From: Lepidodermella squamata
Taxonomy: Eukaryota; Animalia; Gastrotricha
Assembly: GCA_047495785.1 (NCBI GenBank)
Contig: JBLDXI010000028.1
Span: forward strand, 1-64,000
Direction of reading: 5' to 3'
DNA length: 64,000 nucleotides
The notes beneath the pieces were generated by a model. That model did no database searches. It was not told the DNA's origin and saw only the letters and a program-made list of their open reading frames with translations. This document shows positions 1 through 23,941 of this stretch, piece by piece (the stretch's first letter is position 1; every line of letters starts with the position of its first letter). Both the position numbers and the translations under genes were made by a program.

Positions 1-49
1 CTCAGCGCGCCGCAAAGTCGAGAAATGACGTCGGTTACTAGGCTGAATG

Positions 50-269
50 GTATTTCGTGATCCGAGAGCTTCCACTCGCCTTCTACTCCGGGAGTAGGTT
101 GTAGGTTACTTTCGGAGTAGGCTACTCTCAGAGTAGAAGGCGTTTACTCCTAGAGTAGATACCTCTAGGTTTGTTACTCTTTGACACTAAGCTTTTGAAT
201 TATCATTTTCTATCTAAAATTAGGATTACATCTGAGAGCAGATCCTCTAGCTCTCGGATCACGAAATAC
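50..269. mobile_element. MITE-like element with 21-bp perfect inverted ends; mirror at 15680-15899
   Basis: GTATTTCGTGATCCGAGAGCT (50-70) and AGCTCTCGGATCACGAAATAC (249-269); internal short palindromes of the TACTC..GAGTA type. Confidence 0.7.
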
Positions 270-1291
270 GAGCTCTACTAGGGCTAGCTCTACTAGTCTC
301 TTCATTAGTGTTACTGATTTGAGAAACGAAAAGAAACTTTTGTTGTCTGCTCGGTGATAACCGTAGAAAAAAACCAGGCTTTTTAGGGTTCACGTCCTGT
401 CTATACTTCTTTATTCAGTATAACTGCAGCACGTGGGCCTCCAAGATCGCAGATCGCCTTAGTGCCCATCATCGATAGCAGCTAAGAAAGTTGGTGGATG
501 GTCGTTATCCAGAAACGACGACTGTTATGAATATGAGGTGGCGGTACTTTAAGAAAGCCCAGGCATTTCGCCGTACAATTTCGCTATTAACGACTCTGTA
601 CAGCCATGACTGTAGAAACATATCGGTAGAGCGCCCTGACAAAAGAATTGAAGAAAATGAAGGAACTGACTGATGGCTGTAACAATGATCATGCCCACAG
701 CAGATCCCAAATCTACAGTAAACCCGTACTGCCGATCGGAATCGACGGCGACAACGATGTTACTCGTCTGAGGAAAGCTGCCGCAAACAGCGAGGGTAGT
801 GATGGAACTCGCGGCCTCTCCTGCTATGCAGGGAAATGTTGGCTGTCCTCATCAAAAGAGTAGTCAAAAAATACTCATCCTATCAATTGGCAGCTCTGAC
901 GGCTATCAATGCTATCGAAACCAGAATATGACGACGAATTCATTTGCGCGAGAGCGGCAACTCAGCACCTTACCTCAGCAAATCATACATACATTTAGAG
1001 CTATCAAAACACCGTTTCTGAAATATAGGGACTAGTTAAGTTCTTCTCAGAACGTCTTCGGGAATGGTGAATATTTCTCTCAATCGTATTTTTTTACTTG
1101 AATCTTCCAGGAAAATTAACCGTACATGATAAGTCGATAGTTTTTGGCTAAAACCCCATTTATAAACTTTAAAACAACAAATTGTTGAAGACGTTAAACA
1201 TTCAAAAAGTCTGAGCGTATTTTATTGAACAGAATTGACAGAAATAATGTAACGCGTGTAGCGAAGATTAAAGTCACTACATATATAATGA

Positions 1292-1531
1292 TAGACAAAC
1301 CGCGTGGTCAAAGTGGATATGCGAGTTTACGAGCATATACGAGGCAGCGCAGCTGCCACATGTGTTGCAAAGCACGAGACTCACGAGGCGTAGCCGAGTG
1401 AGTCGAGGGCTTAGCAACACTGAAACGAGACTCGCGAGGCGAAGACGAGAGAGTCAAGTTTATGTGGCAGCTGGCTTCCGAGTTTTTTGCTCGTCAACTC
1501 GCATAACACGTGTGGACAGGCGGTTTGTGTA
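1292..1531. repeat. Palindromic element with ~70-bp imperfect inverted ends and two internal GNA-loop mini-hairpin motifs; mirror at 14418-14657
   Basis: TAGACAAACCGC...CAGCTGCCACAT versus ATGTGGCAGCTG...GCGGTTTGTGTA. Internal ACGAGACTCACGAGGCGTAGCCGAG and ACGAGACTCGCGAGGCGAAGACGAG. Confidence 0.7.
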
Positions 1532-1669
1532 TTTATTCCACGTTGTTGCTCATGTCCTGATGGTTTTCGCGTAGGTAATTGGTCTTTTTACCTATAATTT
1601 TTGTCCATTTCTCTAATGAATTCAACCGAACAATGAAAAAATTGAGAAGAAAAAAATGATAAAAAACCG

Positions 1670-1740
1670 TGCACCACCAGGAATCGAACGTGTGAAGCTA
1701 ATGTTAAAAGCATCAACAACCTTTCATTAGCCACTGGTGA
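1670..1740 (-). tRNA. Degenerate tRNA-like unit (TTT at anticodon position), probable pseudogene; mirror at 14209-14279 (+)
   Basis: TCACCAGTGGCTAATG (A-box-like); anticodon arm TGATG-CTTTTAA-CATTA; GTTCGATTCC (B box); CACCA/TGGTG acceptor pairing; followed by a T6 terminator. Confidence 0.6.
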
Positions 1741-1810
1741 CCAAAAAACCATTATCAATTGCTTCTCTGAATCAACTAAAATACCAAAATTGAGCATCTT
1801 GATTTATCCA

Positions 1811-1883
1811 GCCCTTGTAGTCTAGTGGTTGGATTGCTGCTTAGGTTACAGGGAATCATTGGTTCGATGCCTCGTGCGAGCTC
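1811..1883 (+). tRNA. Degenerate tRNA-Pro(AGG)-like unit, probable pseudogene; mirror at 14066-14138 (-)
   Basis: TAGTCTAGTGG A box, CTTAGG anticodon loop, GGTTCGATGCC B box, ...CGAGCTC 3' end and a T6 terminator. Stems are imperfect. Confidence 0.6.
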
Positions 1884-1946
1884 TTTTTTATTTTCACTTT
1901 GAAAACGGTTTTAAGCTTATAAGCCCCTTTTAGGATAAACATTTGT

Positions 1947-2021
1947 GCGTGTCGTCGTTGTCTAGTTGTTTAGCCTTGTGCTAAAAGACAGCGAGCATCG
2001 GGTTCAACGCCCGCTCACGTC
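1947..2021 (+). tRNA. Degenerate tRNA-like unit; mirror at 13928-14002 (-)
   Basis: TTGTCTAGTTG A-box-like motif, intact T-arm CGGG-TTCAACG-CCCG, and GCGTG/CACGT end pairing. Confidence 0.5.
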
Positions 2022-2254
2022 AAAAAAACAAAAAAAACTTGGAATTAATTTTCCAAGTTCAAGTTCTGGGTATATGGCATATCCTAGCTAAATGGCTGGG
2101 ACCATATACGAGTGGTCCACAGCGAGCACACGTATATGTCAGAAACTGCCGAGATACATCGGACGAAAAGCATTAGGATATGAGCAACAGTGGTATAAAA
2201 TCTCCCTAGCTGATTTTATATCAATCAATTAAACGGAACAATCTATTCATCGGC

Positions 2255-5200
2255 TCACTTTGCCGAACACAAGTGACACAAATATTCTTCTTTTTTAGTA
2301 GGTTTTTTTCTTAACCCTGAGCAATTTCCATGAGTCCACAAGTGGCATGTGGAACACTCCACCCACCAACCATTCATGCAATCTGTCACTTTCAAGCATA
2401 CAACGCATCCATCTTCATCTGAATCAGTTATATTTGGCGATGGCGGCGAAATCAAAATTGAATTGACATTTATTTTACAAGTTGGGCGCTTTTTTCTCAA
2501 AATGGGCGATTCTTTTGGCGATGAACATTCAGTGACAAAGGGAGACATATTTTCAGCAGCTGGGTGATTTTCAGCTACAGTAATCGTTGATGCTGCTACA
2601 CTGATGGATCGCGGGCAACAGTAGATTACGCCGGCGATTTGATACCGTTCATTCTGCAATCTTCCGATAGAGCTTTGTTGCCACGAAATCAAAGCTGAAT
2701 GAATGTAAGTTATTAATTTTTGTTTACCATAATTAATTTGCTATCTTACATTTTTGCGCAGCCGTATCATCGATGAGGCCCACAGATGTTTCAGTCAAGG
2801 CGAAAGCGGTGATTGTCACGTAATGGCTGCCGTTAAGCAGTATCGCGGAGTGACGTTGATATCTATTACACCATGTAAACAGGTTATCGGAATTCAGGTT
2901 ATTTATAGGAAATCCTCACATTTTATCGTCATATTGCAGGTTTTCGGGGAACATGAAGATTTCAGAAGCAACAAAAATAGGATCGCATTCTTGGACATCC
3001 ACGTAGATGAACGGCAAGGCCTTTGATGGTGCCACGGTTCTTTGTCCATTACAATAAACTTGCCTGTTCAACTTGATTGTTGATCATGTTTTTTATGTTG
3101 CTAATTAACTCACATTATTTTTCCGGCTTGTGCGGCCATAACATAGCAAAGGCCCCGAGGGCAACCAGAATCGGCGACATCTGTGTAGCTTTTACCGGGG
3201 AACGGTCGCGTACAACGCTGGGTTATTGCAGCCAGTGAATCGGTTAGCAGGGCATTATTGTTCGATTTTTTGTCAGGATTTTGTTGATTTTCTCTGAATT
3301 TTCTATTTTGATAGATACAAATAGTTAGCTTACAAGTGGTTGAAGCTTGGAAGTTATTTACAATTTCAAATCTGCTGGTGGATCAACTTTCAGCAGTTGT
3401 CTCGAGGAGGCTGTTGGCAAGGGACAGTAATTGCTGCTGCAGGTTTCCTGACGTTTCAATCCTGCTTGCTCCATAATGACGTTGAATAACGCGCCCGCAA
3501 TATGGTCCAGCTTGGCTCGGTGTTTGCCGCTTCGTTTCGTAAATTTCATTATGCTCTGCATGCCGCTGTTATTTCTAAGGAAGGCCATTCTTGCTTCTTG
3601 GCATGCCTCTTCAATTGTTGTCGCCGTCAATAACTGGAGCAGCTGTTTGAAGTCGACTGATGGTACGTCGTTTCGGGCATGCATAAGCGCAGTGATAATT
3701 GCATCCAGCGCACATAAATTACCAACTGAAAATTTTCCTGTTTCGCAGGTATTCGGTAGGCAGATGACAGGTGGCTGCATAACCAAACTCGCCTCTGTTT
3801 TGTTGATATCAGATTCAGCAGCCTGATGAACATGATTGCGTTGATTAAACTGCTCTGCGTGCACCCGCAATTTGCTCGTTGAGTTGGCGCACAATATCGG
3901 AGTTCGGCTCGCAAGCAGCCGCTTTGCTACCCGCCTTGGCGTTAGAAAGGCTCATGGATTGGTAGTGGTAGGCCGAATTCGGATCACAACGCCTGGACCA
4001 TTCAGCTGTTGCAGCGGCGATATCAACGGTTTTTTCCGACTCCGTTTGATCGGCTAACCCCCTGCTAGATTTCACTGCTGGCTTTGATTGTTTCGGCTGC
4101 GATATCTTGACAGGATTGGCACGTTTTCGACCTGCCTTCGCCAGCAAAGGGAACTTGAGATCGGCCAAAACTGCACCTACGGTGTCGATCAAGTACTGCT
4201 TGAGGCGTTCAATAAACGGCCCTAGAGCAAAACGCTTTCCGTCGAGCACGTCGATTTTAAAATGACGAAATTCGGACTCTTTGGCCGAATTACTAATCCT
4301 TGTCGCGCCCTGTGGCTGCAGCTTCGTTCTCACGGGCACGGTGCATTTTGGTGTGCCATCTATCTTATAATTCATGCCGAGCATTATTCCCGACCACAGA
4401 AGTATGACAGGCATTCGTCGATTTTTTAGTGCTTTAACACACTGTGGGCGATAAATTTCGTTCCGAACAAGCTTATCAGCGGGCAATTTCTCGAAAATTG
4501 CTGCCTGGGCTGCTTTGATTTTGACTGTCAAATCAATGAAATGCCTTCCTGACGGCGTGCTTTCAGCGAGAGTTCCATCGAACGAATAGTCATTCACTTC
4601 GTCATAAGATTCATCAGAATCCGCTTCCAGCTGATCTATTTCTGAATCTGGCAACAATTCAGCCGCCTCGGATAACGAAATCACTCGACTTTGATCAATG
4701 CTGATTTCTAAAACCGCCATCAGTTCTTTCTCGGCCTCATAGTCGACGAATTCAGAGTCGAAAATTCGAACAATGAGCGAGTAGATTTTTTCGGCTTGAG
4801 CCAGAGTCGCACAATTTTGAAGTCGAGCAAAACAGGATGTTAATAAACGGCGAGACAGCTTTGCTGTTTTCTGACTAACTGGCTCGGTGTTGTCAAGTTT
4901 AGCAAACAAGTCGGCTGTAGCCTTGATACAGTGGTTGTTGCAGATCGCAAGAAACGTCATGTCGTCTACTTCTTTGGCCTCGGCACCAGAAACTACAAAC
5001 CTCCAAACCTTCTGAAGGTATGGAATGAGGTCTATGCCGTTAAAGGCTTTAGTTACGCCATGAAGAAGGGCCCAGCAGAAGTCCGATACAACAAATGACG
5101 GTTTCGGAATCGGACTTGGCTTGAAGTTGTCGAGTTTATATTTGACAATGTCAAGGTAATGGGAGATGTCCAGCGTTCGTTGTTTCGTTAGAAGAAACTG

Positions 5201-6466
5201 CAAAATCGGCAAAGTTCCGAAGCTCTCAGACAAATGGAGGTTGGTGGTTTGCGAAATGATGAAATTGAAATATTGAATCGCCTCAACGTGTTTGCTTCGA
5301 GTAACCACGCTTGAAGTGGAATCGATCATCATGACCGGGCGAGGTTCGAAGAACATTTCACCAGCGTGCAAAGCTGGACTTGAAGCTGCAAGTATGCAGC
5401 AACAGGCTCAGTCGTGTAAGTTTCGATAAATTTGAGTTCATCATCCAATGATTTTTCGAAATTGTATCGTAATTCAAGTTCTTCTCCATAATTGGAAGAA
5501 AACTTGTTCGAAGCATTTTTCTCATATTCTGCTTTCTTGACGGTGCTGTAGGATGGAATGCCCGTGAAGTTTCCATTAAGGACCGCTATTGGGTCATTCT
5601 CCGTGGCTACTCGTTTCAAATGCTTCTGCTTCTCGCTCGGCTTCTGAGTCATGGCTTGAACTTTCGCCCTCTCAGGCCCTGATAGAGGTGGTATAACACC
5701 CGGCACGTGCCATTCAGTCTCGCCAGTTTTCGGATTGATAATTTCGACTGGGTCTGGGTGGATTTGCTGATTAGTCCACGAGAAATGAATGCTTACCGAC
5801 AGCTGTGATGGTTGAGGCGGAACGATTGTGGCGATAATTATCCTCGGACAGTCTGTGTGAAGACACGCGCAAGACATCTCGATCATGCTCGGTTCTCTTC
5901 TAACTTGGCCCTTCACTTTGGGCTTGACACGAACGTAGGAATTCACTCCTTTGAGAACACACTTTTTCTCAACTACGCGTTGGTAAATTTGCCGCAGCCC
6001 AGTTACCCAAACATACTCTCGCAATCTCAGCGGCTTTTCGTTTCGATTACTGGCATTGTTTTGGATTGGCTTGAAAGACGCTTCGAATTCGTCGTATGAA
6101 ATTGTTGTATTGCATTCACCGTCCTCTATTGGGCAGACGTGGCAAGGTTCAGGCGATGATGAAGAAACCGACTCGTCGTCGCTGTCAGCCTTAGTTTTCA
6201 AACGCGACGATACCCAAGCGCTCAAATCACTCAAAGGCCCTGTCGTCAAATCATTATACAACCGTTTCCTAGCCTCTTCAGTGTTCCGGAAGTTGCTTTT
6301 TGTCAGAACAATCGAATAGAAACCGCTGGATGGTTTCGAACATTGCCGTACTACGTCACTTGGAACTTTGTTACCCCACTCTGGGTGGTCTTTGAGATAA
6401 ATTTCTACGGCGTGACGATGAACGTTACAAGGACCAGCCCCCCTTCTGGACGAATTCCTCGCTCAT
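2255..6466 (-). CDS. Mirror copy of the Mutator-like transposase-USP-PHD gene
   Basis: ORFs 5329-6261, 3845-5371, 3358-3894 and 2255-2692 match the right-arm copy except one Ser/Pro change and a 3-nt longer G run near the 5' end. The same introns and frameshifts are present. Confidence 0.85.
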
Positions 6467-7302
6467 AGACTTGATGTAAAATTAACTTTCTATAACATTT
6501 CAAGCAAATATTTATATACTTCCATTTTGCCATTAGTATAGACTTGAAAAATTAAAATTGGAGAAATCGTCGTGAGAAGGTTAAAAAACCTGCTGAACAG
6601 CCTATTGAAACATATGAAATTGGTCGAAAATCCTCACCGAGGTCGGAAATTAAACGAGGTAGTCCAACTGAAAGCGAAAAAACCTGAAATCGAGCCCGAG
6701 CCAGTTGAAAAATGTATTGAATATCTCCTTACAAAAGACGAGAAATAATGCGTCGAAAAACGAAACCAGGCGGCCGATCTGATGTTCGAAATCATCCTAT
6801 CAACTTGAAATGCACCTTAACACGCCAGTTTGAAGATGGGTTGGTAAAATGGCCTCAGAAACTTGCTGTTGACTATCAAGCCTCGAAATCGAAAAATTTA
6901 CTCAAAACTGTCAAGCATCATTCAGTTGTGGTTTGAAGCAATCAATGAAAAACGGCGAAGAATTATTTCATAAAAAGGTAAGCTAATTTTAGGCGTGAAT
7001 TTTCAAAAGTTTGCAATTTGGGAATTGCGAGCGTAGTAAATCCTGTTGTTAAGGTGGATTATGTTGACCTTTCTTAGTGCAATAACTTCCGCTGATATCG
7101 CGAATAATCCCGTCTTTCCTTCTCTTGAAAAATTAGCGATATAATTTTTCACTTCAACAAATGTTTGGAGGGTTCTAATCTGCGGGCTTGGGAAACTATT
7201 TTAAGGTGGAATTTCAGATTCTTATTGCCAGGCACGATGGCTATTTGATTGGAAACTTCTAAACTTCAGAATTTGCGCCATTACTACTTCATCTTGATAA
7301 TT

Positions 7303-8649
7303 CCTTTCCCTGTTCCTTACCTAGGTATTCCTCTCGTTATTAATTGCCAAATTCCTTGCTTTTGACATTTATTGGAACTTGTTTTTGTTCAGTTTTTCCG
7401 AAAAAAGTCTATTAGGTACTTTTACTGGGTTTTTTAAAACCGTTGTTTGGGACTTTATTGAAGATTTATGTGCTGTATTAATGGCACTCACTATTACGTT
7501 ACTTCGCTAATTCCAAATTGATTTGAGGTATCAATGTTACAAACCAGTCATTTTTATCGCCAGTTTAGAGTAAATGTAGTGTCAAGCGTGCATTCACCCA
7601 TTCCTGTCACCGCTTTGGAACAGTTTCAAATCGCTGTGATTGTAAGAAGTTTTGCTTTCATTAGTTGTTTCATGATGTTGTAGGGTGGTAATACAATAAT
7701 TACCGTATATAGGTAGAAATAAAGGGCAGTCTCGTAGAGAGCCTCCAGGTAATTCATATTTTTTACCCGTTATGCAAGCTGAAAAGGATAAAGATTTCGC
7801 TGCTATAACAGTTTACATTTTATTTTACAAAAATATCTAACTCTTGTGAATTTATTCTGTTCTTCCTCGATATGCTTTTCTGATCGATCGCCTTCGGTTT
7901 TCGCGCAACCGCTCTTTCAGCTGGCTTAGTTACTTTGCCCGAGTTCTTCCCTTCGCCTTATTGTGGCAGCATTCGATAATATAATATTTCGAGAAGAATC
8001 GCGAATAGAGTCGACAATTATGGCTTTTCCTGCTCGTGTCGTAGCTATAGTTATCAGACATAAAACATCATAACACATTTGACCTTAAATCCTATTGTTA
8101 GTTACCATGAAAGCCGGGTTTCAAGGTTGAAGTCGTACTGAAATTTCCGAAAATTCCAAGACCGAAAACAAACCCATCGAAATTGAAAAATTCGGAAAAT
8201 TTAGAGCTTAGAGTGCTTGAATTTTAGGCTGTTTGAAATCTACGGGTGAAACAGTGAAAAGTCATTTTACGAGCCTTCTTTCAGCCTCCAAATCCAATAA
8301 GATTCAGCCTCCACGGCATGAAATGCTCGAACATTTATGTCGGAACATTAGGTAAAATATATATTTTTGCGCTTGAGACTTTAAAAATATCGGCTGATTA
8401 ATGGCGAATCCTCAATTTGATATTGGAAAATGTTTACGAATGTTCATGTTTATATTTATTCGCCCATAAAGTTCGAGATGACAGCATACTTTACCACACC
8501 AATAGAATGGAAAATTCAAAAAATAGATGCATCAGTTGTTATCATTTGGTTCAGATTCTTCCAGCCGCATACAGCTGTTGATAGACTGCTTCAGTGTCGC
8601 AGCTCAGTTTCTTCCCATTTGCTAGCAGTAATTACCTAGGATAAAAATA
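7303..8649. other. Unique AT-rich spacer (loop) of the palindrome
   Basis: Symmetry breaks at 7303/8649. No long ORF. TTACCTAGG occurs at 7317-7325 and 8632-8640. Confidence 0.9.
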
Positions 8650-9485
8650 AATTATCAAGATGAAGTAGTAATGGCGCAAATTCTGAAGTTTAGAAGTTTC
8701 CAATCAAATAGCCATCGTGCCTGGCAATAAGAATCTGAAATTCCACCTTAAAATAGTTTCCCAAGCCCGCAGATTAGAACCCTCCAAACATTTGTTGAAG
8801 TGAAAAATTATATCGCTAATTTTTCAAGAGAAGGAAAGACGGGATTATTCGCGATATCAGCGGAAGTTATTGCACTAAGAAAGGTCAACATAATCCACCT
8901 TAACAACAGGATTTACTACGCTCGCAATTCCCAAATTGCAAACTTTTGAAAATTCACGCCTAAAATTAGCTTACCTTTTTATGAAATAATTCTTCGCCGT
9001 TTTTCATTGATTGCTTCAAACCACAACTGAATGATGCTTGACAGTTTTGAGTAAATTTTTCGATTTCGAGGCTTGATAGTCAACAGCAAGTTTCTGAGGC
9101 CATTTTACCAACCCATCTTCAAACTGGCGTGTTAAGGTGCATTTCAAGTTGATAGGATGATTTCGAACATCAGATCGGCCGCCTGGTTTCGTTTTTCGAC
9201 GCATTATTTCTCGTCTTTTGTAAGGAGATATTCAATACATTTTTCAACTGGCTCGGGCTCGATTTCAGGTTTTTTCGCTTTCAGTTGGACTACCTCGTTT
9301 AATTTCCGACCTCGGTGAGGATTTTCGACCAATTTCATATGTTTCAATAGGCTGTTCAGCAGGTTTTTTAACCTTCTCACGACGATTTCTCCAATTTTAA
9401 TTTTTCAAGTCTATACTAATGGCAAAATGGAAGTATATAAATATTTGCTTGAAATGTTATAGAAAGTTAATTTTACATCAAGTCT

Positions 9486-12400
9486 ATGAGCGAGGAATTC
9501 GTCCAGAAGGGCTGGTCCTTGTAACGTTCATCGTCACGCCGTAGAAATTTATCTCAAAGACCACCCAGAGTGGGGTAACAAAGTTCCAAGTGACGTAGTA
9601 CGGCAATGTTCGAAACCATCCAGCGGTTTCTATTCGATTGTTCTGACAAAAAGCAACTTCCGGAACACTGAAGAGGCTAGGAAACGGTTGTATAATGATT
9701 TGACGACAGGGCCTTTGAGTGATTTGAGCGCTTGGGTATCGTCGCGTTTGAAAACTAAGGCTGACAGCGACGACGAGTCGGTTTCTTCATCATCGCCTGA
9801 ACCTTGCCACGTCTGCCCAATAGAGGACGGTGAATGCAATACAACAATTTCATACGACGAATTCGAAGCGTCTTTCAAGCCAATCCAAAACAATGCCAGT
9901 AATCGAAACGAAAAGCCGCTGAGATTGCGAGAGTATGTTTGGGTAACTGGGCTGCGGCAAATTTACCAACGCGTAGTTGAGAAAAAGTGTGTTCTCAAAG
10001 GAGTGAATTCCTACGTTCGTGTCAAGCCCAAAGTGAAGGGCCAAGTTAGAAGAGAACCGAGCATGATCGAGATGTCTTGCGCGTGTCTTCACACAGACTG
10101 TCCGAGGATAATTATCGCCACAATCGTTCCGCCTCAACCATCACAGCTGTCGGTAAGCATTCATTTCTCGTGGACTAATCAGCAAATCCACCCAGACCCA
10201 GTCGAAATTATCAATCCGAAAACTGGCGAGACTGAATGGCACGTGCCGGGTGTTATACCACCTCTATCAGGGCCTGAGAGGGCGAAAGTTCAAGCCATGA
10301 CTCAGAAGCCGAGCGAGAAGCAGAAGCATTTGAAACGAGTAGCCACGGAGAATGACCCAATAGCGGTCCTTAATGGAAACTTCACGGGCATTCCATCCTA
10401 CAGCACCGTCAAGAAAGCAGAATATGAGAAAAATGCTTCGAACAAGTTTTCTTCCAATTATGGAGAAGAACTTGAATTACGATACAATTTCGAAAAATCA
10501 TTGGATGATGAACTCAAATTTATCGAAACTTACACGACTGAGCCTGTTGCTGCATACTTGCAGCTTCAAGTCCAGCTTTGCACGCTGGTGAAATGTTCTT
10601 CGAACCTCGCCCGGTCATGATGATCGATTCCACTTCAAGCGTGGTTACTCGAAGCAAACACGTTGAGGCGATTCAATATTTCAATTTCATCATTTCGCAA
10701 ACCACCAACCTCCATTTGCCTGAGAGCTTCGGAACTTTGCCGATTTTGCAGTTTCTTCTAACGAAACAACGAACGCTGGACATCTCCCATTACCTTGACA
10801 TTGTCAAATATAAACTCGACAACTTCAAGCCAAGTCCGATTCCGAAACCGTCATTTGTTGTATCGGACTTCTGCTGGGCCCTTCTTCATGGCGTAACTAA
10901 AGCCTTTAACGGCATAGACCTCATTCCATACCTTCAGAAGGTTTGGAGGTTTGTAGTTTCTGGTGCCGAGGCCAAAGAAGTAGACGACATGACGTTTCTT
11001 GCGATCTGCAACAACCACTGTATCAAGGCTACAGCCGACTTGTTTGCTAAACTTGACAACACCGAGCCAGTTAGTCAGAAAACAGCAAAGCTGTCTCGCC
11101 GTTTATTAACATCCTGTTTTGCTCGACTTCAAAATTGTGCGACTCTGGCTCAAGCCGAAAAAATCTACTCGCTCATTGTTCGAATTTTCGACTCTGAATT
11201 CGTCGACTATGAGGCCGAGAAAGAACTGATGGCGGTTTTAGAAATCAGCATTGATCAAAGTCGAGTGATTTCGTTATCCGAGGCGGCTGAATTGTTGCCA
11301 GATTCAGAAATAGATCAGCTGGAAGCGGATTCTGATGAATCTTATGACGAAGTGAATGACTATTCGTTCGATGGAACTCTCGCTGAAAGCACGCCGTCAG
11401 GAAGGCATTTCATTGATTTGACAGTCAAAATCAAAGCAGCCCAGGCAGCAATTTTCGAGAAATTGCCCGCTGATAAGCTTGTTCGGAACGAAATTTATCG
11501 CCCACAGTGTGTTAAAGCACTAAAAAATCGACGAATGCCTGTCATACTTCTGTGGTCGGGAATAATGCTCGGCATGAATTATAAGATAGATGGCACACCA
11601 AAATGCACCGTGCCCGTGAGAACGAAGCTGCAGCCACAGGGCGCGACAAGGATTAGTAATTCGGCCAAAGAGTCCGAATTTCGTCATTTTAAAATCGACG
11701 TGCTCGACGGAAAGCGTTTTGCTCTAGGGCCGTTTATTGAACGCCTCAAGCAGTACTTGATCGACACCGTAGGTGCAGTTTTGGCCGATCTCAAGTTCCC
11801 TTTGCTGGCGAAGGCAGGTCGAAAACGTGCCAATCCTGTCAAGATATCGCAGCCGAAACAATCAAAGCCAGCAGTGAAATCTAGCAGGGGGTTAGCCGAT
11901 CAAACGGAGTCGGAAAAAACCGTTGATATCGCCGCTGCAACAGCTGAATGGTCCAGGCGTTGTGATCCGAATTCGGCCTACCACTACCAATCCATGAGCC
12001 TTTCTAACGCCAAGGCGGGTAGCAAAGCGGCTGCTTGCGAGCCGAACTCCGATATTGTGCGCCAACTCAACGAGCAAATTGCGGGTGCACGCAGAGCAGT
12101 TTAATCAACGCAATCATGTTCATCAGGCTGCTGAATCTGATATCAACAAAACAGAGGCGAGTTTGGTTATGCAGCCACCTGTCATCTGCCTACCGAATAC
12201 CTGCGAAACAGGAAAATTTTCAGTTGGTAATTTATGTGCGCTGGATGCAATTATCACTGCGCTTATGCATGCCCGAAACGACGTACCATCAGTCGACTTC
12301 AAACAGCTGCTCCAGTTATTGACGGCGACAACAATTGAAGAGGCATGCCAAGAAGCAAGAATGGCCTTCCTTAGAAATAACAGCGGCATGCAGAGCATAA

Positions 12401-13694
12401 TGAAATTTACGAAACGAAGCGGCAAACACCGAGCCAAGCTGGACCATATTGCGGGCGCGTTATTCAACGTCATTATGGAGCAAGCAGGATTGAAACGTCA
12501 GGAAACCTGCAGCAGCAATTACTGTCCCTTGCCAACAGCCTCCTCGAGACAACTGCTGAAAGTTGATCCACCAGCAGATTTGAAATTGTAAATAACTTCC
12601 AAGCTTCAACCACTTGTAAGCTAACTATTTGTATCTATCAAAATAGAAAATTCAGAGAAAATCAACAAAATCCTGACAAAAAATCGAACAATAATGCCCT
12701 GCTAACCGATTCACTGGCTGCAATAACCCAGCGTTGTACGCGACCGTTCCCCGGTAAAAGCTACACAGATGTCGCCGATTCTGGTTGCCCTCGGGGCCTT
12801 TGCTATGTTATGGCCGCACAAGCCGGAAAAATAATGTGAGTTAATTAGCAACATAAAAAACATGATCAACAATCAAGTTGAACAGGCAAGTTTATTGTAA
12901 TGGACAAAGAACCGTGGCACCATCAAAGGCCTTGCCGTTCATCTACGTGGATGTCCAAGAATGCGATCCTATTTTTGTTGCTTCTGAAATCTTCATGTTC
13001 CCCGAAAACCTGCAATATGACGATAAAATGTGAGGATTTCCTATAAATAACCTGAATTCCGATAACCTGTTTACATGGTGTAATAGATATCAACGTCACT
13101 CCGCGATACTGCTTAACGGCAGCCATTACGTGACAATCACCGCTTTCGCCTTGACTGAAACATCTGTGGGCCTCATCGATGATACGGCTGCGCAAAAATG
13201 TAAGATAGCAAATTAATTATGGTAAACAAAAATTAATAACTTACATTCATTCAGCTTTGATTTCGTGGCAACAAAGCTCTATCGGAAGATTGCAGAATGA
13301 ACGGTATCAAATCGCCGGCGTAATCTACTGTTGCCCGCGATCCATCAGTGTAGCAGCATCAACGATTACTGTAGCTGAAAATCACCCAGCTGCTGAAAAT
13401 ATGTCTCCCTTTGTCACTGAATGTTCATCGCCAAAAGAATCGCCCATTTTGAGAAAAAAGCGCCCAACTTGTAAAATAAATGTCAATTCAATTTTGATTT
13501 CGCCGCCATCGCCAAATATAACTGATTCAGATGAAGATGGATGCGTTGTATGCTTGAAAGTGACAGATTGCATGAATGGTTGGTGGGTGGAGTGTTCCAC
13601 ATGCCACTTGTGGACTCATGGAAATTGCTCAGGGTTAAGAAAAAAACCTACTAAAAAAGAAGAATATTTGTGTCACTTGTGTTCGGCAAAGTGA
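9486..13694 (+). CDS. Mutator-superfamily (NOF-FB/Rehavkus-like) DDE transposase fused to a USP-like cysteine protease and a PHD finger; ~1,330 aa if repaired, frameshifted as given
   Basis: ORF 9688-10620 is open from 9490 and has a C-x4-C...H Zn-finger-like motif. ORF 10578-12104 has MMIDSTS (D, 10626), VVSDFCWAL (D, 10866), CNNH (CxxH, 11007) and SNSAKESEF (E, 11670). ORF 12055-12591 has a Cys box GNLCALDAII (Cys 12235). GT-AG introns 12588-12646, 12836-12885, 13030-13086 and 13200-13254 give an open frame through the His box YQRHSAILLNGSHYVT...LIDD into a C4HC3 PHD finger ending at 13694. Frameshifts near 10577, near 12084 and probably near 9510. Confidence 0.85.
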
Positions 13695-13927
13695 GCCGAT
13701 GAATAGATTGTTCCGTTTAATTGATTGATATAAAATCAGCTAGGGAGATTTTATACCACTGTTGCTCATATCCTAATGCTTTTCGTCCGATGTATCTCGG
13801 CAGTTTCTGACATATACGTGTGCTCGCTGTGGACCACTCGTATATGGTCCCAGCCATTTAGCTAGGATATGCCATATACCCAGAACTTGAACTTGGAAAA
13901 TTAATTCCAAGTTTTTTTTGTTTTTTT

Positions 13928-14002
13928 GACGTGAGCGGGCGTTGAACCCGATGCTCGCTGTCTTTTAGCACAAGGCTAAACAACTAGACAACGACGACAC
14001 GC
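13928..14002 (-). tRNA. Mirror copy of the tRNA-like unit at 1947-2021
   Basis: Same sequence in the right arm. Confidence 0.5.
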
Positions 14003-14065
14003 ACAAATGTTTATCCTAAAAGGGGCTTATAAGCTTAAAACCGTTTTCAAAGCGAAAATAAAAAA

Positions 14066-14138
14066 GAGCTCGCACGAGGCATCGAACCAATGATTCCCTG
14101 TAACCTAAGCAGCAATCCAACCACTAGACTACAAGGGC
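14066..14138 (-). tRNA. Mirror copy of the tRNA-Pro-like unit at 1811-1883
   Basis: Same sequence in the right arm. Confidence 0.6.
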
Positions 14139-14208
14139 TGGATAAATCAAGATGCTCAATTTTGGTATTTTAGTTGATTCAGAGAAGCAATTGATAATGG
14201 TTTTTTGG

Positions 14209-14279
14209 TCACCAGTGGCTAATGAAAGGTTGTTGATGCTTTTAACATTAGCTTCACACGTTCGATTCCTGGTGGTGCA
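14209..14279 (+). tRNA. Mirror copy of the tRNA-like unit at 1670-1740
   Basis: Same sequence in the right arm, followed by TTTTTT. Confidence 0.6.
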
Positions 14280-16480
14280 CGGTTTTTTATCATTTTTTTC
14301 TTCTCAATTTTTTCATTGTTCGGTTGAATTCATTAGAGAAATGGACAAAAATTATAGGTAAAAAGACCAATTACCTACGCGAAAACCATCAGGACATGAG
14401 CAACAACGTGGAATAAATACACAAACCGCCTGTCCACACGTGTTATGCGAGTTGACGAGCAAAAAACTCGGAAGCCAGCTGCCACATAAACTTGACTCTC
14501 TCGTCTTCGCCTCGCGAGTCTCGTTTCAGTGTTGCTAAGCCCTCGACTCACTCGGCTACGCCTCGTGAGTCTCGTGCTTTGCAACACATGTGGCAGCTGC
14601 GCTGCCTCGTATATGCTCGTAAACTCGCATATCCACTTTGACCACGCGGTTTGTCTATCATTATATATGTAGTGACTTTAATCTTCGCTACACGCGTTAC
14701 ATTATTTCTGTCAATTCTGTTCAATAAAATACGCTCAGACTTTTTGAATGTTTAACGTCTTCAACAATTTGTTGTTTTAAAGTTTATAAATGGGGTTTTA
14801 GCCAAAAACTATCGACTTATCATGTACGGTTAATTTTCCTGGAAGATTCAAGTAAAAAAATACGATTGAGAGAAATATTCACCATTCCCGAAGACGTTCT
14901 GAGAAGAACTTAACTAGTCCCTATATTTCAGAAACGGTGTTTTGATAGCTCTAAATGTATGTATGATTTGCTGAGGTAAGGTGCTGAGTTGCCGCTCTCG
15001 CGCAAATGAATTCGTCGTCATATTCTGGTTTCGATAGCATTGATAGCCGTCAGAGCTGCCAATTGATAGGATGAGTATTTTTTGACTACTCTTTTGATGA
15101 GGACAGCCAACATTTCCCTGCATAGCAGGAGAGGCCGCGAGTTCCATCACTACCCTCGCTGTTTGCGGCAGCTTTCCTCAGACGAGTAACATCGTTGTCG
15201 CCGTCGATTCCGATCGGCAGTACGGGTTTACTGTAGATTTGGGATCTGCTGTGGGCATGATCATTGTTACAGCCATCAGTCAGTTCCTTCATTTTCTTCA
15301 ATTCTTTTGTCAGGGCGCTCTACCGATATGTTTCTACAGTCATGGCTGTACAGAGTCGTTAATAGCGAAATTGTACGGCGAAATGCCTGGGCTTTCTTAA
15401 AGTACCGCCACCTCATATTCATAACAGTCGTCGTTTCTGGATAACGACCATCCACCAACTTTCTTAGCTGCTATCGATGATGGGCACTAAGGCGATCTGC
15501 GATCTTGGAGGCCCACGTGCTGCAGTTATACTGAATAAAGAAGTATAGACAGGACGTGAACCCTAAAAAGCCTGGTTTTTTTCTACGGTTATCACCGAGC
15601 AGACAACAAAAGTTTCTTTTCGTTTCTCAAATCAGTAACACTAATGAAGAGACTAGTAGAGCTAGCCCTAGTAGAGCTCGTATTTCGTGATCCGAGAGCT
15701 AGAGGATCTGCTCTCAGATGTAATCCTAATTTTAGATAGAAAATGATAATTCAAAAGCTTAGTGTCAAAGAGTAACAAACCTAGAGGTATCTACTCTAGG
15801 AGTAAACGCCTTCTACTCTGAGAGTAGCCTACTCCGAAAGTAACCTACAACCTACTCCCGGAGTAGAAGGCGAGTGGAAGCTCTCGGATCACGAAATACC
15901 ATTCAGCCTAGTAACCGACGTCATTTCTCGACTTTGCTACTGCTCAGCGCTCAGCGCGCCGCAATGTCGGCTTCACACACGTGACCCAACTCCGGGGCAA
16001 ATGCGATTTCTGTTGCTACTCAATTTATTAATCATTAATTTATATTTATTTTACTTTAATAATTAGAGCACCATTATCTTTAAATATTTTTGTCAAAACC
16101 AGATAACAACAGAATTTCTGAGACTTTGTCAAAAGCTGACTCTCGCAGCTACTTTTTTCCGAGCTTTGCAGTGTCAAAACTGTGGGTCATACGGAGACGG
16201 GGGTACACTCGTTTTACTCGTTGGATCATGCTATTGATGATTTCAACAATGCTACAATCGTAATTCCATTCTGCTGGAAGTTTTCTGTCAACTGATCCGA
16301 CGTGAAAGAAGAAAGAAGTAGTCATTTGAAACATCTTCGATCGTAGATGGCAATTCTGTCAAGTAAATGAGCTCGCATCCCTGAAATCAGGAAAAATACG
16401 CTGGATGTTGTGGGTATTGAGTATCTCCTATGGTCGGTTTATAAGTTCAGATTTATTCATAGATATACAGTTAATTGAAA

Positions 16481-18228
16481 ATGATTCTACGATACTTACG
16501 CCTACTGACGCGATCACTGGCGACCAAACGATTTCGTGTCGACCGTCGTCTTGCTCTTCTACCGCCAAAGCTTAATACGAGTCACAATTCATTCATCATT
16601 TTCCGGCGTTCCTTCTCAGCCGTGCCATCCAAGAATGCCTGGCTTGACTTTGCTAAACGAGCCACAATGGGCAAACTTGTCGGTACTGCTGTCGTGTTTG
16701 TTTTTGGTAGTATCCCACTTAACTACGCCTATTTTAGATATAAGGATGCGGCAGCGTTGAAACATCGTTTAGAACAAGGCTCTGGCGCATTTTTAGTCGG
16801 GAAAAAGACAGTTTTGATTGATCGTCCAGAGTTGGAGAAGGATTTGAAAGAAATGATAACGCCATCAACACCGGGCGAAGCTGAAAATTATTTCCTCATT
16901 ACTGGAGAGCATGGCACAGGCAAGACGACTGCGGTTATGAAAACGTGTCGAACTGTTGGCAGCGGCGTGATTTATGTGGATGTCCCGATAAATGGTGATA
17001 AATTTGCTGGTGCTTTCGCCGAGGCTACCGCCTACAAAACTCGTGCTAGCGGATTGTTTCGATTCTTAAACAAACAATTTTTCGGAGACGAGCCGACTAC
17101 TACTGTAAAGCCATGTAAGGTGAAAATAGAGTTTCACGCTCTCATTTATATTAGACGTGCCGAATAGAAAGGTCCCTTGTTTACAGCCTAATAAGAATCT
17201 GAGGGGAATTGTGATAGTACATTTATTAGTGCGTAGTCACCCCAATTGTGTGACGCAACAAAAGCGACAAGGGCCTTTTCTGTGAGGCACATCTCATATG
17301 TGCTTTACGCTCTATATGTGCTATATTTGTTCTTCTATAGGGAATGAAGGAAACTGGGACGCTATTTACAGTGCGTTCCAACAAACAGCGAATTGGTACA
17401 TGGCGAAATATGATAAAGTACCTGTTCTTATCATCGACAACGTGAATAGGCTGGCAAAAGAGAATCCAAAAATGTTAGCATCGCTTCAAGAAGGCGCAAA
17501 AGACGCCATTGACCGCGGTCTATTCGTTACTGTATTTGTATCATCCGATGGCGTGGCGCCTCAGCAAATTACGAGTTCGTTTATTTCCTGTCAATTCGTT
17601 TCAGTCATTCAGCTAACTGTTTTATTTATTCAATAGGCAGAAGTGCCTTTTCACGTGGGAGGTTGTATCGCGTAGGCGATGCGAATCAAGAGCAAGTGTT
17701 CGAGTACCTTCAGAAACGTGGCGTGGTGAACACTGATGGTACGCTCTACTCGCGCGTATTTGCTCTTGTCGGTGGACGTTTGAAAGAGTTGAGCCGTGTT
17801 TCTGCTGCCCTGACAAAGGGAAAATCTTTTCAAGGTACTCACTTGTATTTTGCTCTTCTATATATGTAAACACTATTACGCGTTTTATAGACGTGAAGAA
17901 GGCGCTCTTTGCACAGGTTCAGAAACAACTCGCGGAGTGCCGGACTACGAATGAAAGTGCGACTCTCCTGCAAGCCGTTGTTAACTGTACGAAAACGCAG
18001 CCGGTGTGCGATGTCAGCGACGTTCAGCTATATTTGAGCAAGGGTGGTTCAGCTTTTCGTTTTTTTTTCGGTTCAACTGTCGATGATGAGAAGATTCAAA
18101 ATGTCGTGGATAAAATGGCTTCGGCAAACCTGCTTTCAAAGTTCACAAAATCGAGCTGGACGTTTCACTCAAATGTTGAGAGGTCATACTTTGAGGAACA
18201 CCCACAGGTTACGGTCATGTCACGATGA
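16481..18228 (+). CDS. P-loop (AAA+/STAND-like) ATPase with an Arg-rich N-terminal presequence and one TM helix; 4 exons, 467 aa
   Basis: Exons 16481-17114, 17341-17574, 17637-17834 and 17891-18228 join in frame via GT-AG introns (1,404 nt). Walker A GEHGTGKT, Walker B VLIIDNVN, then VFVSSDG and RSAFSR motifs. TM segment LVGTAVVFVFGSIPLNYAYF. Confidence 0.85.
17157..17290. mobile_element. Small MITE-like insert in ATPase intron 1
   Basis: Imperfect inverted ends GTGCCGAATAGAAAGGTCCCTTGT and ACAAGGGCCTTTTCTGTGAGGCAC. It would account for this intron being 226 nt while the others are ~60 nt. Confidence 0.5.
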
Positions 18229-22259: not shown

Positions 22260-22412
22260 ACTGCTTGAAGGTTGCCGGTTAGTTTTTTTCAATTAATGTT
22301 ATCATTTTCATACCAAACTTTTTTGCATTATATTCATTTGTTTAACCCGTATAAAACCGACCCTTGATTCCGCCGACGCCGCTCATTCCAGCGAAACAAA
22401 GAAAAGTAAAGA
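22260..22412 (+). repeat. ~150-bp dispersed repeat; inverted copy at 33042-33200
   Basis: Exact shared blocks ACTGCTTGAAGGTTG and TTCCGCCGACGCCGCTCATT with colinear similarity between them. Confidence 0.75.
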
Positions 22413-23941
22413 TAAGTAGTAGAGCCCTTATCACTCCGATTTATAAAAATAAGGGTGAAAAATCCAAGTGTCAAAATTATCGAGGCATCAGTCTGCTTTC
22501 TGTTGTAGGTAAACTTTATGCTGTTATCCTCGAAAGAAAACTAAGGTCTTTGATTGGATCGAAAATCTCCAAATTACAATTCGGATTTCAGCCTCTTAAA
22601 GGCACCCGTGATTGCATTTTTGTTCTTAGACAAATAATTGAAAAAATTATTTTCTTTCGCAAAGAACTTCACCTTGTCTTCATTGACCTCGAAAAAGCCT
22701 ATGATCTGGTTGATAGGGAAAAGGTTTGGACAGCCTTGGAAAACATGGGTGTTGAAACTAGCCTTATTGACGCGATTAAGAGTCTATATAAAGTAAATAA
22801 AGTTGCGGTAAAAGTGGATTCTGAGGTCTCCGAATTTTTCTATGTAACTAGGGGTCTAAGGCAAGGCTGCCCGCTGTCCCCTCTGCTTTTCATTGCTACT
22901 TTTAACAAAATTTGCGAACAATTATACGACACAAAATTTGGTTTCCCTATGAACAACGGTGATTATCTAAATTTATTAGCTTTCGCCGATGATGGAACTC
23001 TCCTAGGCATGAACCATGACGAAATTAAGCGCCTTCTAGAAATTTTTGACATGGCATGCGAAGAATTAGGATTGAAAATTAACGTGGCAAAAACTCAATA
23101 CATGATAATCTCCAGGGACGATGCTGCAGTAAGAAATTATGAACTAGAGCTGCGCGGATCGAAACTGGAAAAGGTCTCCAAATTCAAATACTTAGGTAGC
23201 ATTATAACCAGCGACGGTCGCATTGACGAAGAATTAAATTATAGAATTTCAAAGGCTGGCAGCGTATTTGGTGCGATGAATAAATTCATGTGCAGTAGGA
23301 ACCATGTGTCATTACAAACCAAATTGAAAGTACTCACTTGCGTCATCGTACCTACCATCATTTACGCCTGCGAATCCTGGAATATTTCTTTAAGCCAGGA
23401 AAATAGGTTGAATGTTTTAGAATATCGTTGGCTACGAGCGATTTTAGGTATACACCTGATGGATTATATTCCTAACATTGACATTAGATTGGCATTGTGC
23501 GGAGGTCTGATCGAAGTCAGCCGCATCATTGAAAAACAGCGTTTAAGATATCTAGGACACATCATTAGATCTCGTGATTACGATGAGGACGGCCTTCTGA
23601 ACTTGATTTATACGTGGACACCTCCGTTCGGGTGGTTCGCACCGAGAGGCAGACCTCGAACTAGGTGGATAAACGGCATAAACAGAAGTCTACACAAGGT
23701 TGGCATTGGTAAGGAAGTTCGCCGGAAGAAAAGACAACCCAAAAATCAGAAAGGCAAAAAGCCAGCTAAAAACAAAAAATCCGGCGAAAAAGAAAATAAA
23801 TTTGAAATTAAAATTATTCCTGATCTGCAATTGATTGAATTACTTTCTTTTGATAAAACTGAATGGCGCAACATTGTTGACTCAATGAATGATTATGAAT
23901 TTTTTGGAAAAAGTAGAATCTTCAACTGTGGGGGTGGGTGA
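22364..23941 (+). CDS. Reverse transcriptase of the RTE LINE (endonuclease missing; first ~21 codons are flank/TSD)
   Basis: NYRGISLL, QFGF, FIDLEKAYD, GLRQGCPLSPLLF, FADD, GLKIN..KT, FKYLGS, RLRYLGHIIR, RGRPRTRW. Confidence 0.93.
   Translation: MIPPTPLIPAKQRKVKISSRALITPIYKNKGEKSKCQNYRGISLLSVVGKLYAVILERKLRSLIGSKISKLQFGFQPLKGTRDCIFVLRQIIEKIIFFRKELHLVFIDLEKAYDLVDREKVWTALENMGVETSLIDAIKSLYKVNKVAVKVDSEVSEFFYVTRGLRQGCPLSPLLFIATFNKICEQLYDTKFGFPMNNGDYLNLLAFADDGTLLGMNHDEIKRLLEIFDMACEELGLKINVAKTQYMIISRDDAAVRNYELELRGSKLEKVSKFKYLGSIITSDGRIDEELNYRISKAGSVFGAMNKFMCSRNHVSLQTKLKVLTCVIVPTIIYACESWNISLSQENRLNVLEYRWLRAILGIHLMDYIPNIDIRLALCGGLIEVSRIIEKQRLRYLGHIIRSRDYDEDGLLNLIYTWTPPFGWFAPRGRPRTRWINGINRSLHKVGIGKEVRRKKRQPKNQKGKKPAKNKKSGEKENKFEIKIIPDLQLIELLSFDKTEWRNIVDSMNDYEFFGKSRIFNCGGG

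Follow-up and report, generated by a model that had tools for sequence, protein, structure and literature searches.

Results

Architecture of the locus

The sequence analysed here is a stretch of 64,000 nucleotides from the gastrotrich Lepidodermella squamata (GenBank assembly GCA_047495785.1, contig JBLDXI010000028.1, positions 1 to 64,000 of the forward strand), referred to below as the window. Our subject is a gene on the + strand, in the right arm of a palindrome at the start of the window, which appears to encode a Mutator-type transposase with a C-terminal tail that holds a putative protease domain and a PHD finger. From 9486 to 13694 the + strand presents one long coding region, divided into three pieces (A, B and C) and four further exons (D to G). 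The ATG that a preliminary description of this DNA took as the start opens a short frame at 9486-9524, where the three-frame translation gives 12 codons and then a stop. Piece A (9490-10620) is an open frame with no in-frame ATG before 9688; we assign it to the N-terminal region of the transposase. Pfam recognises no domain in it, and by alignment its C-terminal part fits the consensus 'YIQ..S..PF...L..E.QL' that stands before the first catalytic Asp in related proteins. Piece B (10578-12104, 508 codons) is the DDE catalytic core, as judged by homology, invariant residues and fold.

Exon C (12055-12587) comprises a linker, a USP-like Cys box, a helical region and the motif CSSNYCP. An in-phase GT..AG intron (12588-12646) separates it from exon D (12647-12835), a putative fingers region with the motif CPRGLC, and another (12836-12885) leads to exon E (12886-13029), which is putatively of fingers or palm type. 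The USP-like His box lies in exon F (13087-13199), and exon G (13255-13694) carries a degenerate second motif, 'RYQIAGVIY', followed by the PHD finger and the stop. The four GT..AG introns between C and G measure 59, 50, 57 and 55 nt, and their removal leaves one open frame of 472 codons that runs from 12055 as far as the stop codon (13692-13694). A, B and C stand in three different frames, and this copy therefore encodes no single protein. The minus-strand open reading frames (ORFs) upstream, at 9016-9380, show no domain.

The transposase core

The candidate catalytic residues of piece B are D17, D97, the pair C144xxH147, and E365, encoded at 10626, 10866, 11007-11018 and 11670 on the + strand. 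An exhaustive HMMER search returned 355 homologous proteins, none of them close (best E 2e-16, 25-30% identity). An alignment of 37 long relatives keeps, apart from the start Met, only D, D, C, H and E unchanged throughout, and the columns that hold D17, D97, C144, H147 and E365 of the window are invariant or nearly so. A word-indexed protein search with piece B, limited by query length and word matching, gave nothing, and a sequence search of the PDB with the same ORF gave no match.

Structural comparison is more informative on the identity of this core. The AlphaFold (AF2) model of piece B, built with 36 relatives, has a predicted template-modelling (TM) score of 0.74, with 221 residues above 90 in the predicted local distance difference test (pLDDT). 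It presents the strand-strand-strand-helix-strand order of an RNase H-like fold, with the CxxH motif straight after the fifth strand, then a helical insertion, and the Glu on a later helix. A Foldseek search against the PDB places chains of the ISCth4 transposase first (E 6e-4), with the P element and Hermes transposases lower; ISCth4 belongs to the IS256 family, which comprises bacterial kin of Mutator. In a shape search of the ESM Atlas the first row is an unnamed arthropod cluster (TM 0.62) and the second is the cluster of the '120.7 kDa protein in NOF-FB transposable element' (TM 0.50 by query, root-mean-square deviation 3.6 over 286 residues), in whose members Peptidase_C48 occurs in 45% and PHD in 34%. 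Rows 3-9 are clusters with PF10551 MULE or PF00872 Transposase_mut. The TM-scores of the Mutator/IS256-type matches of piece B are modest (0.38-0.50). These fold matches to ISCth4, NOF-FB and MULE proteins make the core a transposase of the Mutator superfamily, in its NOF-like branch. A Zisupton/KDZ identity was also considered and was dropped because the fold search favours Mutator/NOF.

The C-terminal tail

In the tail, GNLC lies at 12226, with its Cys codon at 12235-12237 in exon C. Paired cysteines follow as CSSNYC at 12508 and as CPRGLC in exon D, then GSHY at 13118 and IDD at 13175, 18 residues past the His. An order of Cys, CxxxxC, CxxxxC, His and Asp, with a His-to-Asp spacing of +18, suits the thumb, fingers and palm of a USP. 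Membership of the USP group is thus seen at the motif level only: the Cys box, the His box, the order of the Asp and the paired-cysteine fingers insert are all present. A PDB sequence search with exon C found no match, and a word-indexed protein search with the same exon, again length- and word-limited, found nothing. No match to C48 is seen, and the catalytic order is Cys-His-Asp, not the His-Asp-Cys order of Ulp1. An OTU assignment was rejected as well, the motif being GNxC and not GNC, and the distance from Cys to His about 245 residues. The beginning of exon G (13257-13330, ERYQIAGVIYCC) reads as a degenerate second copy of the opening of the exon F His box (NRYQRHSAILLNGSHY), without the His.

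Comparison with the relatives shows what else may occupy the position behind the core. Among the 37 long relatives a PHD finger occurs in 9, and the slot holds Ulp1 (C48) in 5, OTU in 4 and UCH in 2. In the clam Mercenaria (XP_053374366.1) the UCH in the same slot scores 25.9 bits vs a Pfam cut-off of 23.9, and canonical USP Cys boxes are seen in three relatives (P0003, P0010 and P0092). Eight relatives, the two best matches included, share a common domain with the signature 'WGG..NTCx[ILV]DN[LMF]L', followed in most of them by 'C[ST]xxxCP' about 100 residues on; the Pro is missing in P0002 (CSQSNCI) and P0007 (CSNRECG). The window has its counterparts of both motifs, GNLCALDAII and CSSNYCP, at the same spacing. 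Except for P0018, the gene predictions of these relatives stop soon past the second motif, which is the position of the first intron in the window. Downstream exons at the loci of P0001 and P0106 encode 'YILxA.T.H..SHFTCC...W..[YF]D' (mutual E 5.6e-8) and correspond to exon F; these His-box exons lie at 11958-12176 in locus L001 and at 8290-8475 in locus L004. The Cys and His boxes are kept across relatives with a core identity of only ~25%.

Language-model features were also compared. For exon C the sole named ESM families are UCH, at 0.86 and 0.84, and UCH scores below 0.9 were taken as leads only. The domain of the Holothuria protein (P0018:1160-1357) scores 0.95 for C14orf28/DRIP1 (192/256 features) and 0.88 for UCH. 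By these features the conserved C-terminal domain of P0018, P0001, P0041 and P0106 lies nearest to the vertebrate C14orf28/DRIP1 family, a closeness that suggests kinship between this host gene and the transposon module. A word-indexed search with P0018:1160-1357 returned one fragment and no C14orf28. C14orf28 has been classed with the USP-type deubiquitinases, having a papain-like domain and a second, fingers-like domain (PMC10318531).

The PHD finger in exon G (13542-13682) has the C4HC3 pattern C-x2-C-x13-C-x2-C-x4-H-x2-C-x16-C-x2-C, and two residues ahead of the His it keeps the customary Trp. Its match to PF00628 has E 9.6e-5 (22.8 bits, just below the 24-bit cut-off), and PF20826 matches in exon G at E 6.2e-5; across all ORF pieces of the locus, this weak PHD is all that Pfam returns. 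Relatives carry the finger at the C terminus (P0005 and P0034) or, in several others, at the N terminus. Two parts of the preliminary description are thus borne out by this analysis: a Mutator transposase with the order D..D..CxxH..E, on the strength of the residues invariant in relatives and the fold matches of the modelled core, and a C4HC3 PHD finger, whose spacing is canonical even though its PF00628 score falls under the cut-off.

Copy number, frame breaks and transcripts

Public contigs from two runs, X1 and X2 (the latter presumably an RNA run, its contigs 100% identical to the window), were aligned to 10001-16000. X1 supplies 123 contigs with 90-100% identity to this region, a spread that points to a family of many copies, some young and others older. 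Both frame breaks can be read from these other copies. At the first (10604-10605, between A and B) an X1 contig has four more bases, an extra CTAT behind 10604 (depth 119/119); at the second (12080-12081, between B and C) an X1 contig has two more, an extra AG behind 12080 (depth 275/275). The additions fall exactly at the frame changes, so A, B and C form one frame in that copy. With CTAT restored, the region round 10604 also agrees with the consensus of the relatives before the first catalytic Asp. Both copies in the window, the right arm and its mirror, carry the two frameshifting deletions. The earlier claim of one gene that joins transposase, protease and PHD finger holds at the level of the family, and in this copy two frameshifts split the frame in three.

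Joints in X2 skip 13188-13244 and, with a 6-nt ambiguity, 13010-13066. The skipped stretches are 57 nt each and are bounded by CT..AC on the + strand, that is, GT..AG on the minus strand. Relative to the sense introns they are displaced by 20 and 12 nt, and the sense donor and branch site, read in reverse, serve as branch site and donor. The simplest reading is that antisense transcripts are spliced at mirror-image signals.

The tRNA-like units and the nested insertion

Three tRNA-like units with A or B boxes lie past the stop. Unit 1 (13926-13999, minus strand) is reported by ARAGORN at -ps80 only; it has the B box GGTTCAACGC and is followed by an A-rich run on its own strand. Unit 2 (14066-14138, minus strand) has the A box TAGTCTAGTGG and the B box GGTTCGATGC, and then T6. 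Unit 3 (14207-14281, + strand) is the best of the three, being found at -ps90, and is also followed by T6. With default settings ARAGORN reports 0 tRNAs, and Rfam has 0 tRNA-like matches at E up to 1. The -ps80 setting returns 53 matches in the window and is therefore a loose threshold; the relaxed background is about 0.7 per kb, and only unit 3 passes -ps90. Strict B boxes are rare in the window, at three per strand, and two of them fall in this cluster (units 1 and 2); unit 2 has a strict A box as well. Alignment shows units 1 and 2 to be diverged forms of a tRNA-like sequence, and unit 3 to differ from them. The units are real but degenerate tRNA derivatives. The preliminary description was right that three such units are present with recognisable A or B boxes, and it is to be qualified in that they emerge only at relaxed ARAGORN thresholds.

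All three units sit inside a nested insertion of 905 bp (13756-14660), which is flanked by TTATA at 13751-13755 and 14661-14665. Two X1 contigs from other copies join 13725 to 14666 and 13750 to 14661, so that the whole tRNA-like segment is missing from them; one of these contigs is a diverged copy, and its 31 intervening letters resemble 13726-13755. Unit 2 is a dispersed repeat, X1 contigs matching only 14089-14179 with other flanks, and the X1 depth peaks over 13800-14600. An X2 contig departs at 14663 and continues in unrelated sequence; depth in X2 is nil across 13601-14400. The tRNA-like cluster does not belong to the transposon but arrived later by insertion. The insertion is composite and non-autonomous. 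A unit bounded by terminal inverted repeats (TIRs) and resembling a miniature inverted-repeat transposable element (13760-14405; 26-nt arms at 13760-13785 and 14380-14405, 88% complementary) encloses the three different tRNA-like sequences in mixed orientation, and a second small fold-back element of 242 bp follows (14417-14658; 71-nt arms, 72% complementary).

The palindrome and the element ends

The locus forms the right arm (8645-15937, + strand) of a near-perfect palindrome of 15.9 kb (12-15937). The left arm (12-7307, minus strand) is a mirror copy of the whole locus, a position x on the right arm corresponding to about 15949-x, and a unique spacer of 1337 bp (7308-8644) lies between the two. 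The arms measure about 7.29 kb and are 99.93% identical; a global alignment finds 2 substitutions, a 3-bp indel in a G run (G3/G6) and 2 terminal mismatches. The two genes diverge from the centre of the palindrome. Both arms carry the frameshifts and the nested insertion, and the inverted duplication is therefore younger than both defects.

Towards its outer end each arm has nested inverted repeats, together with GAGTAG/CTACTC motifs, of a sort typical of transposon ends. On the right arm this subterminal region spans 15680-15937 (+ strand) and is probably the 3' end of the element. No other fragments of the element were found in the window. The 15-mer CTCAGCGCGCCGCAA at positions 1-15 recurs directly at 15950-15964, 12 nt past the right arm, with a 7-nt tandem GCTCAGC adjoining, and the palindrome is in this way flanked by a direct repeat of 11-15 nt; this repeat could be a target-site duplication of the palindrome, a template-switch scar or an artefact.

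Other features of the window

Just outside the palindrome, on the + strand, a 230-codon ORF (16475-17167) shows a weak AAA_16 / STAND nucleoside triphosphatase match (E 1e-4 to 8e-4). Further along the same strand, an ORF of 525 codons at 22364-23941 contains a reverse transcriptase domain (PF00078, E 7e-37) and is probably that of a retrotransposon. On the minus strand an ORF at 41509-42258 matches mitochondrial ribosomal protein S26 (PF14943, E 1e-24), which confirms the DNA as animal and nuclear. A G+C-rich block (58-64%) at 48000-54000 has long overlapping ORFs on both strands, with one weak match to SOGA (PF11365, E 2e-5).

Discussion

The best explanation of the region 8645-15937 is a copy, now defective, of a cut-and-paste DNA transposon that is young and multi-copy and belongs to the Mutator superfamily, in a NOF-FB/Rehavkus-like branch. 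We consider this likely, and that judgement is a joint one which covers the transposon copy, the gene with its protease and PHD parts, and the later insertion of the tRNA-like segment. In intact copies a single gene would specify an N-terminal region and an RNase H-like DDE core with its CxxH motif and helical insertion domain. The same gene would then encode a divergent USP-type cysteine protease domain, papain-like and fingers-bearing, and a C-terminal PHD finger, these two parts being reached via four short 3' introns. By its family membership, the DDE core would perform the cutting and joining. The tail is probably of the deubiquitinating type, since the same slot in relatives is filled with Ulp1, OTU or canonical UCH. 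Its probable task is to free proteins of chromatin or of repair, where transposition takes place, from ubiquitin or a ubiquitin-like modifier, with the PHD finger as the part that would dock on histone H3. Anti-silencing functions borne by transposons are known, and a role of the protease and PHD finger in target choice or anti-silencing, which is the reader-eraser idea of the preliminary description, may be envisaged for this element. In the copy described here, the loss of 4 bp at 10604 and of 2 bp at 12080 would have broken the frame into three pieces; a copy of this kind would be mobilised at best by other copies. The inverted duplication of the locus would have come after the 905-bp non-autonomous, TIR-bearing insertion had landed at a TTATA site in the 3' untranslated region.

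Several observations weigh against this explanation. No Pfam transposase model, PF10551 and PF00872 included, matches the pieces in the window or eight of the relatives; we know of no Pfam model for this transposase branch. The USP-like domain has no match to PF00443 or any USP at E up to 10, either with the exons or with a family profile, and a 9-member profile of the conserved C-terminal domain retrieves no USP from the PDB or Pfam. Alignment by hhalign to canonical USP Cys boxes is in the correct register with P of only 0.03-0.11. Exon C alone, modelled by AlphaFold from the single sequence, did not fold (pLDDT 38, a quality too low for searching by fold). Ser stands in place of the oxyanion Asn at -5 from the Cys, and Thr in place of the Gln that usually follows the Cys box. 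Each of the two frame-break calls comes from one X1 contig. No sense-strand spliced RNA is seen among the X1 and X2 contigs, the only spliced contigs being those of X2 on the opposite strand. Lastly, 7308-9500 contains no 5' TIR partner, and termini, TIRs and target-site duplication are not definable from the window; each arm therefore looks like a copy without its 5' end.

The identity of the protease domain deserves separate weighing. The description of a complete Cys/His/Asp protease of USP fold stands as far as the motifs, which are found where they were placed; Pfam, PDB and profile searches name no USP. We judge the domain to be USP-like with good probability. The alternative is that the tail is another cysteine-rich or zinc-binding module, or another papain-like family, with GNxC and HY present by chance. 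This would agree with the silence of the profile and structure searches for both the window exons and the 9-member profile, with the marginal hhalign result and with ESM scores for UCH below 0.9. It is improbable nonetheless: the order of the motifs and the His-to-Asp spacing of +18 fit a USP, and both boxes are conserved across relatives at ~25% core identity. Moreover, the same slot holds bona fide UCH, OTU and Ulp1 domains in relatives, and C14orf28, the family that ESM features place nearest, is counted among the USP-type deubiquitinases. A bolder proposal goes beyond a USP-like assignment. The domain, with the pattern WGG..NTCxIDNLL ... CSxxxCP ... SH[FY] ... D, might be an old conserved partner of NOF/Rehavkus-like Mutator transposases in clam, sea cucumber and gastrotrich, and belong to the same family as C14orf28/DRIP1. 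We rate this as rather unlikely. If true, C14orf28/DRIP1 would be a domesticated deubiquitinase module of transposon origin, or the reverse, and Ulp1, OTU and USP proteases would be exchanged among Mutator-type elements in a single slot whose function is exerted on ubiquitin-like marks during transposition.

Three further readings concern the locus as a whole. In the preliminary description the gene and the tRNA-like units formed one integrated self-defence unit, a transposase with PHD reader and USP eraser that is accompanied by three TFIIIC-binding units as heterochromatin barriers. The A or B boxes are indeed recognisable, T6 follows two of the units, and the family conserves both the protease and the PHD module. 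The insulator half of this idea fails because the two X1 contigs from other copies are without the tRNA-like segment, the very outcome that the preliminary description named as its refutation; the segment moreover has TIRs of its own and a TTATA duplication. The units also fail ARAGORN at default and Rfam, no tRNA genes lie near the distant relatives (a weak test), and the gene of this copy is frameshifted; the integrated unit is thus very improbable. Because the copy is broken and the supposed Pol III insulator belongs to an insertion unrelated to it, the locus itself is of limited value. Still less credible is a domesticated, transposase-derived host gene in place of a transposon copy: a long conserved ORF with accessory chromatin-type domains would suit it, and it has to face many copies (the X1 variants at 90-100% identity), two frameshifts, and subterminal repeats typical of transposon ends. 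The palindrome raises a question of another kind, namely whether it arose from a fold-back chimeric read in assembly or amplification, the second copy then not being genomic. The 99.93% identity of the arms, a G3 vs G6 homopolymer among their few differences, the start of the left arm only 11 nt from the start of the window, and the many opposite-strand joints in X2 contigs would all be expected of such an artefact. The asymmetric 1337-bp spacer and the defined outer ends speak for a genomic palindrome, as do the two true substitutions between the arms and a left flank that is not the reverse complement of the right, with 1-15 repeated directly at 15950-15964. An artefact is therefore a serious possibility, yet the less probable one. 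The defective transposon copy remains our preferred explanation, and it is the one compared with known elements below.

Comparison with known elements

Among the closest known elements are those of the NOF-FB group. They share its core fold (TM 0.50 over 286 residues, by structure only), the PHD finger and a C-terminal cysteine protease directed at ubiquitin-like modifiers; they differ in that their protease is Ulp1 (Peptidase_C48) and not USP-like, and the window has no tandem-repeat TIRs. Such repeats are found in the relative at L001, whose protein P0001 is the top match. This element measures at least 10.7 kb and has an N-terminal PHD finger. Its TIRs, at 2736-3430 and 12517-13455, extend over at least 690 bp of 198-209-bp tandem repeats, and its 3' minisatellite has a unit of 198 bp in 4.1 copies. 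The TIRs of L001 recall both the fold-back (FB) arms and the Rehavkus minisatellite; a minisatellite before the 3' TIR is the hallmark of Rehavkus (PMC6446971). [quoted passage not shown] The element is Rehavkus-like, set beside Rehavkus by its features and not by sequence similarity.

Other parallels exist. Mutator-like elements (MULEs) with Ulp1 (Arabidopsis, melon, rice, maize, hydra and lancelet) and Ginger1 likewise have a cysteine protease of the ubiquitin/SUMO pathways placed C-terminal to a DDE transposase, and sometimes a PHD finger; their protease is C48 or OTU and not USP-like, and the Ginger1 core is of the integrase type. Canonical USP/UCH enzymes (PF00443) agree with the window domain in how Cys box, paired cysteines, His box and Asp are ordered and locally patterned, whereas the window domain does not score with PF00443 and has its oxyanion Asn and conserved Gln replaced. 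C14orf28/DRIP1 of vertebrates is the nearest ESM family to the domain of the relatives, and it has a second domain, as the window and other copies have a degenerate second motif after the first domain. Unlike the element, it is a host gene without a transposase, and no link was found at the level of sequence; the relation is a lead only.

The combination had been presented as one that might be new. In kind the modules have been known since 2010: Mutator transposases were described with Ulp1 and PHD, Ginger1 with OTU or Ulp1 (and PHD), and Trichomonas vaginalis with a fusion of transposase_11 and Peptidase C19 (XP_001314237.1), together with the proposal that the ubiquitin and SUMO pathways take part in transposition (Bao, Kapitonov, Jurka 2010, PMC2836005). 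The Trichomonas protein resembles ours in that a DNA transposase is joined to a hydrolase of the USP family (C19); it differs in its IS5/Harbinger-type transposase and its protist host, and no PHD finger is reported for it. Our literature search found no paper on a Mutator element with a USP, or on a USP-like module in Mutator/NOF-type elements. The novelty thus lies in the USP-like version within the Mutator/NOF branch, the type of module being already known. Within one transposase clade, a single slot is filled by Ulp1, OTU, canonical UCH or a divergent USP-like domain, often together with a PHD finger, and this pattern argues for a shared, selected function at a chromatin or repair step.

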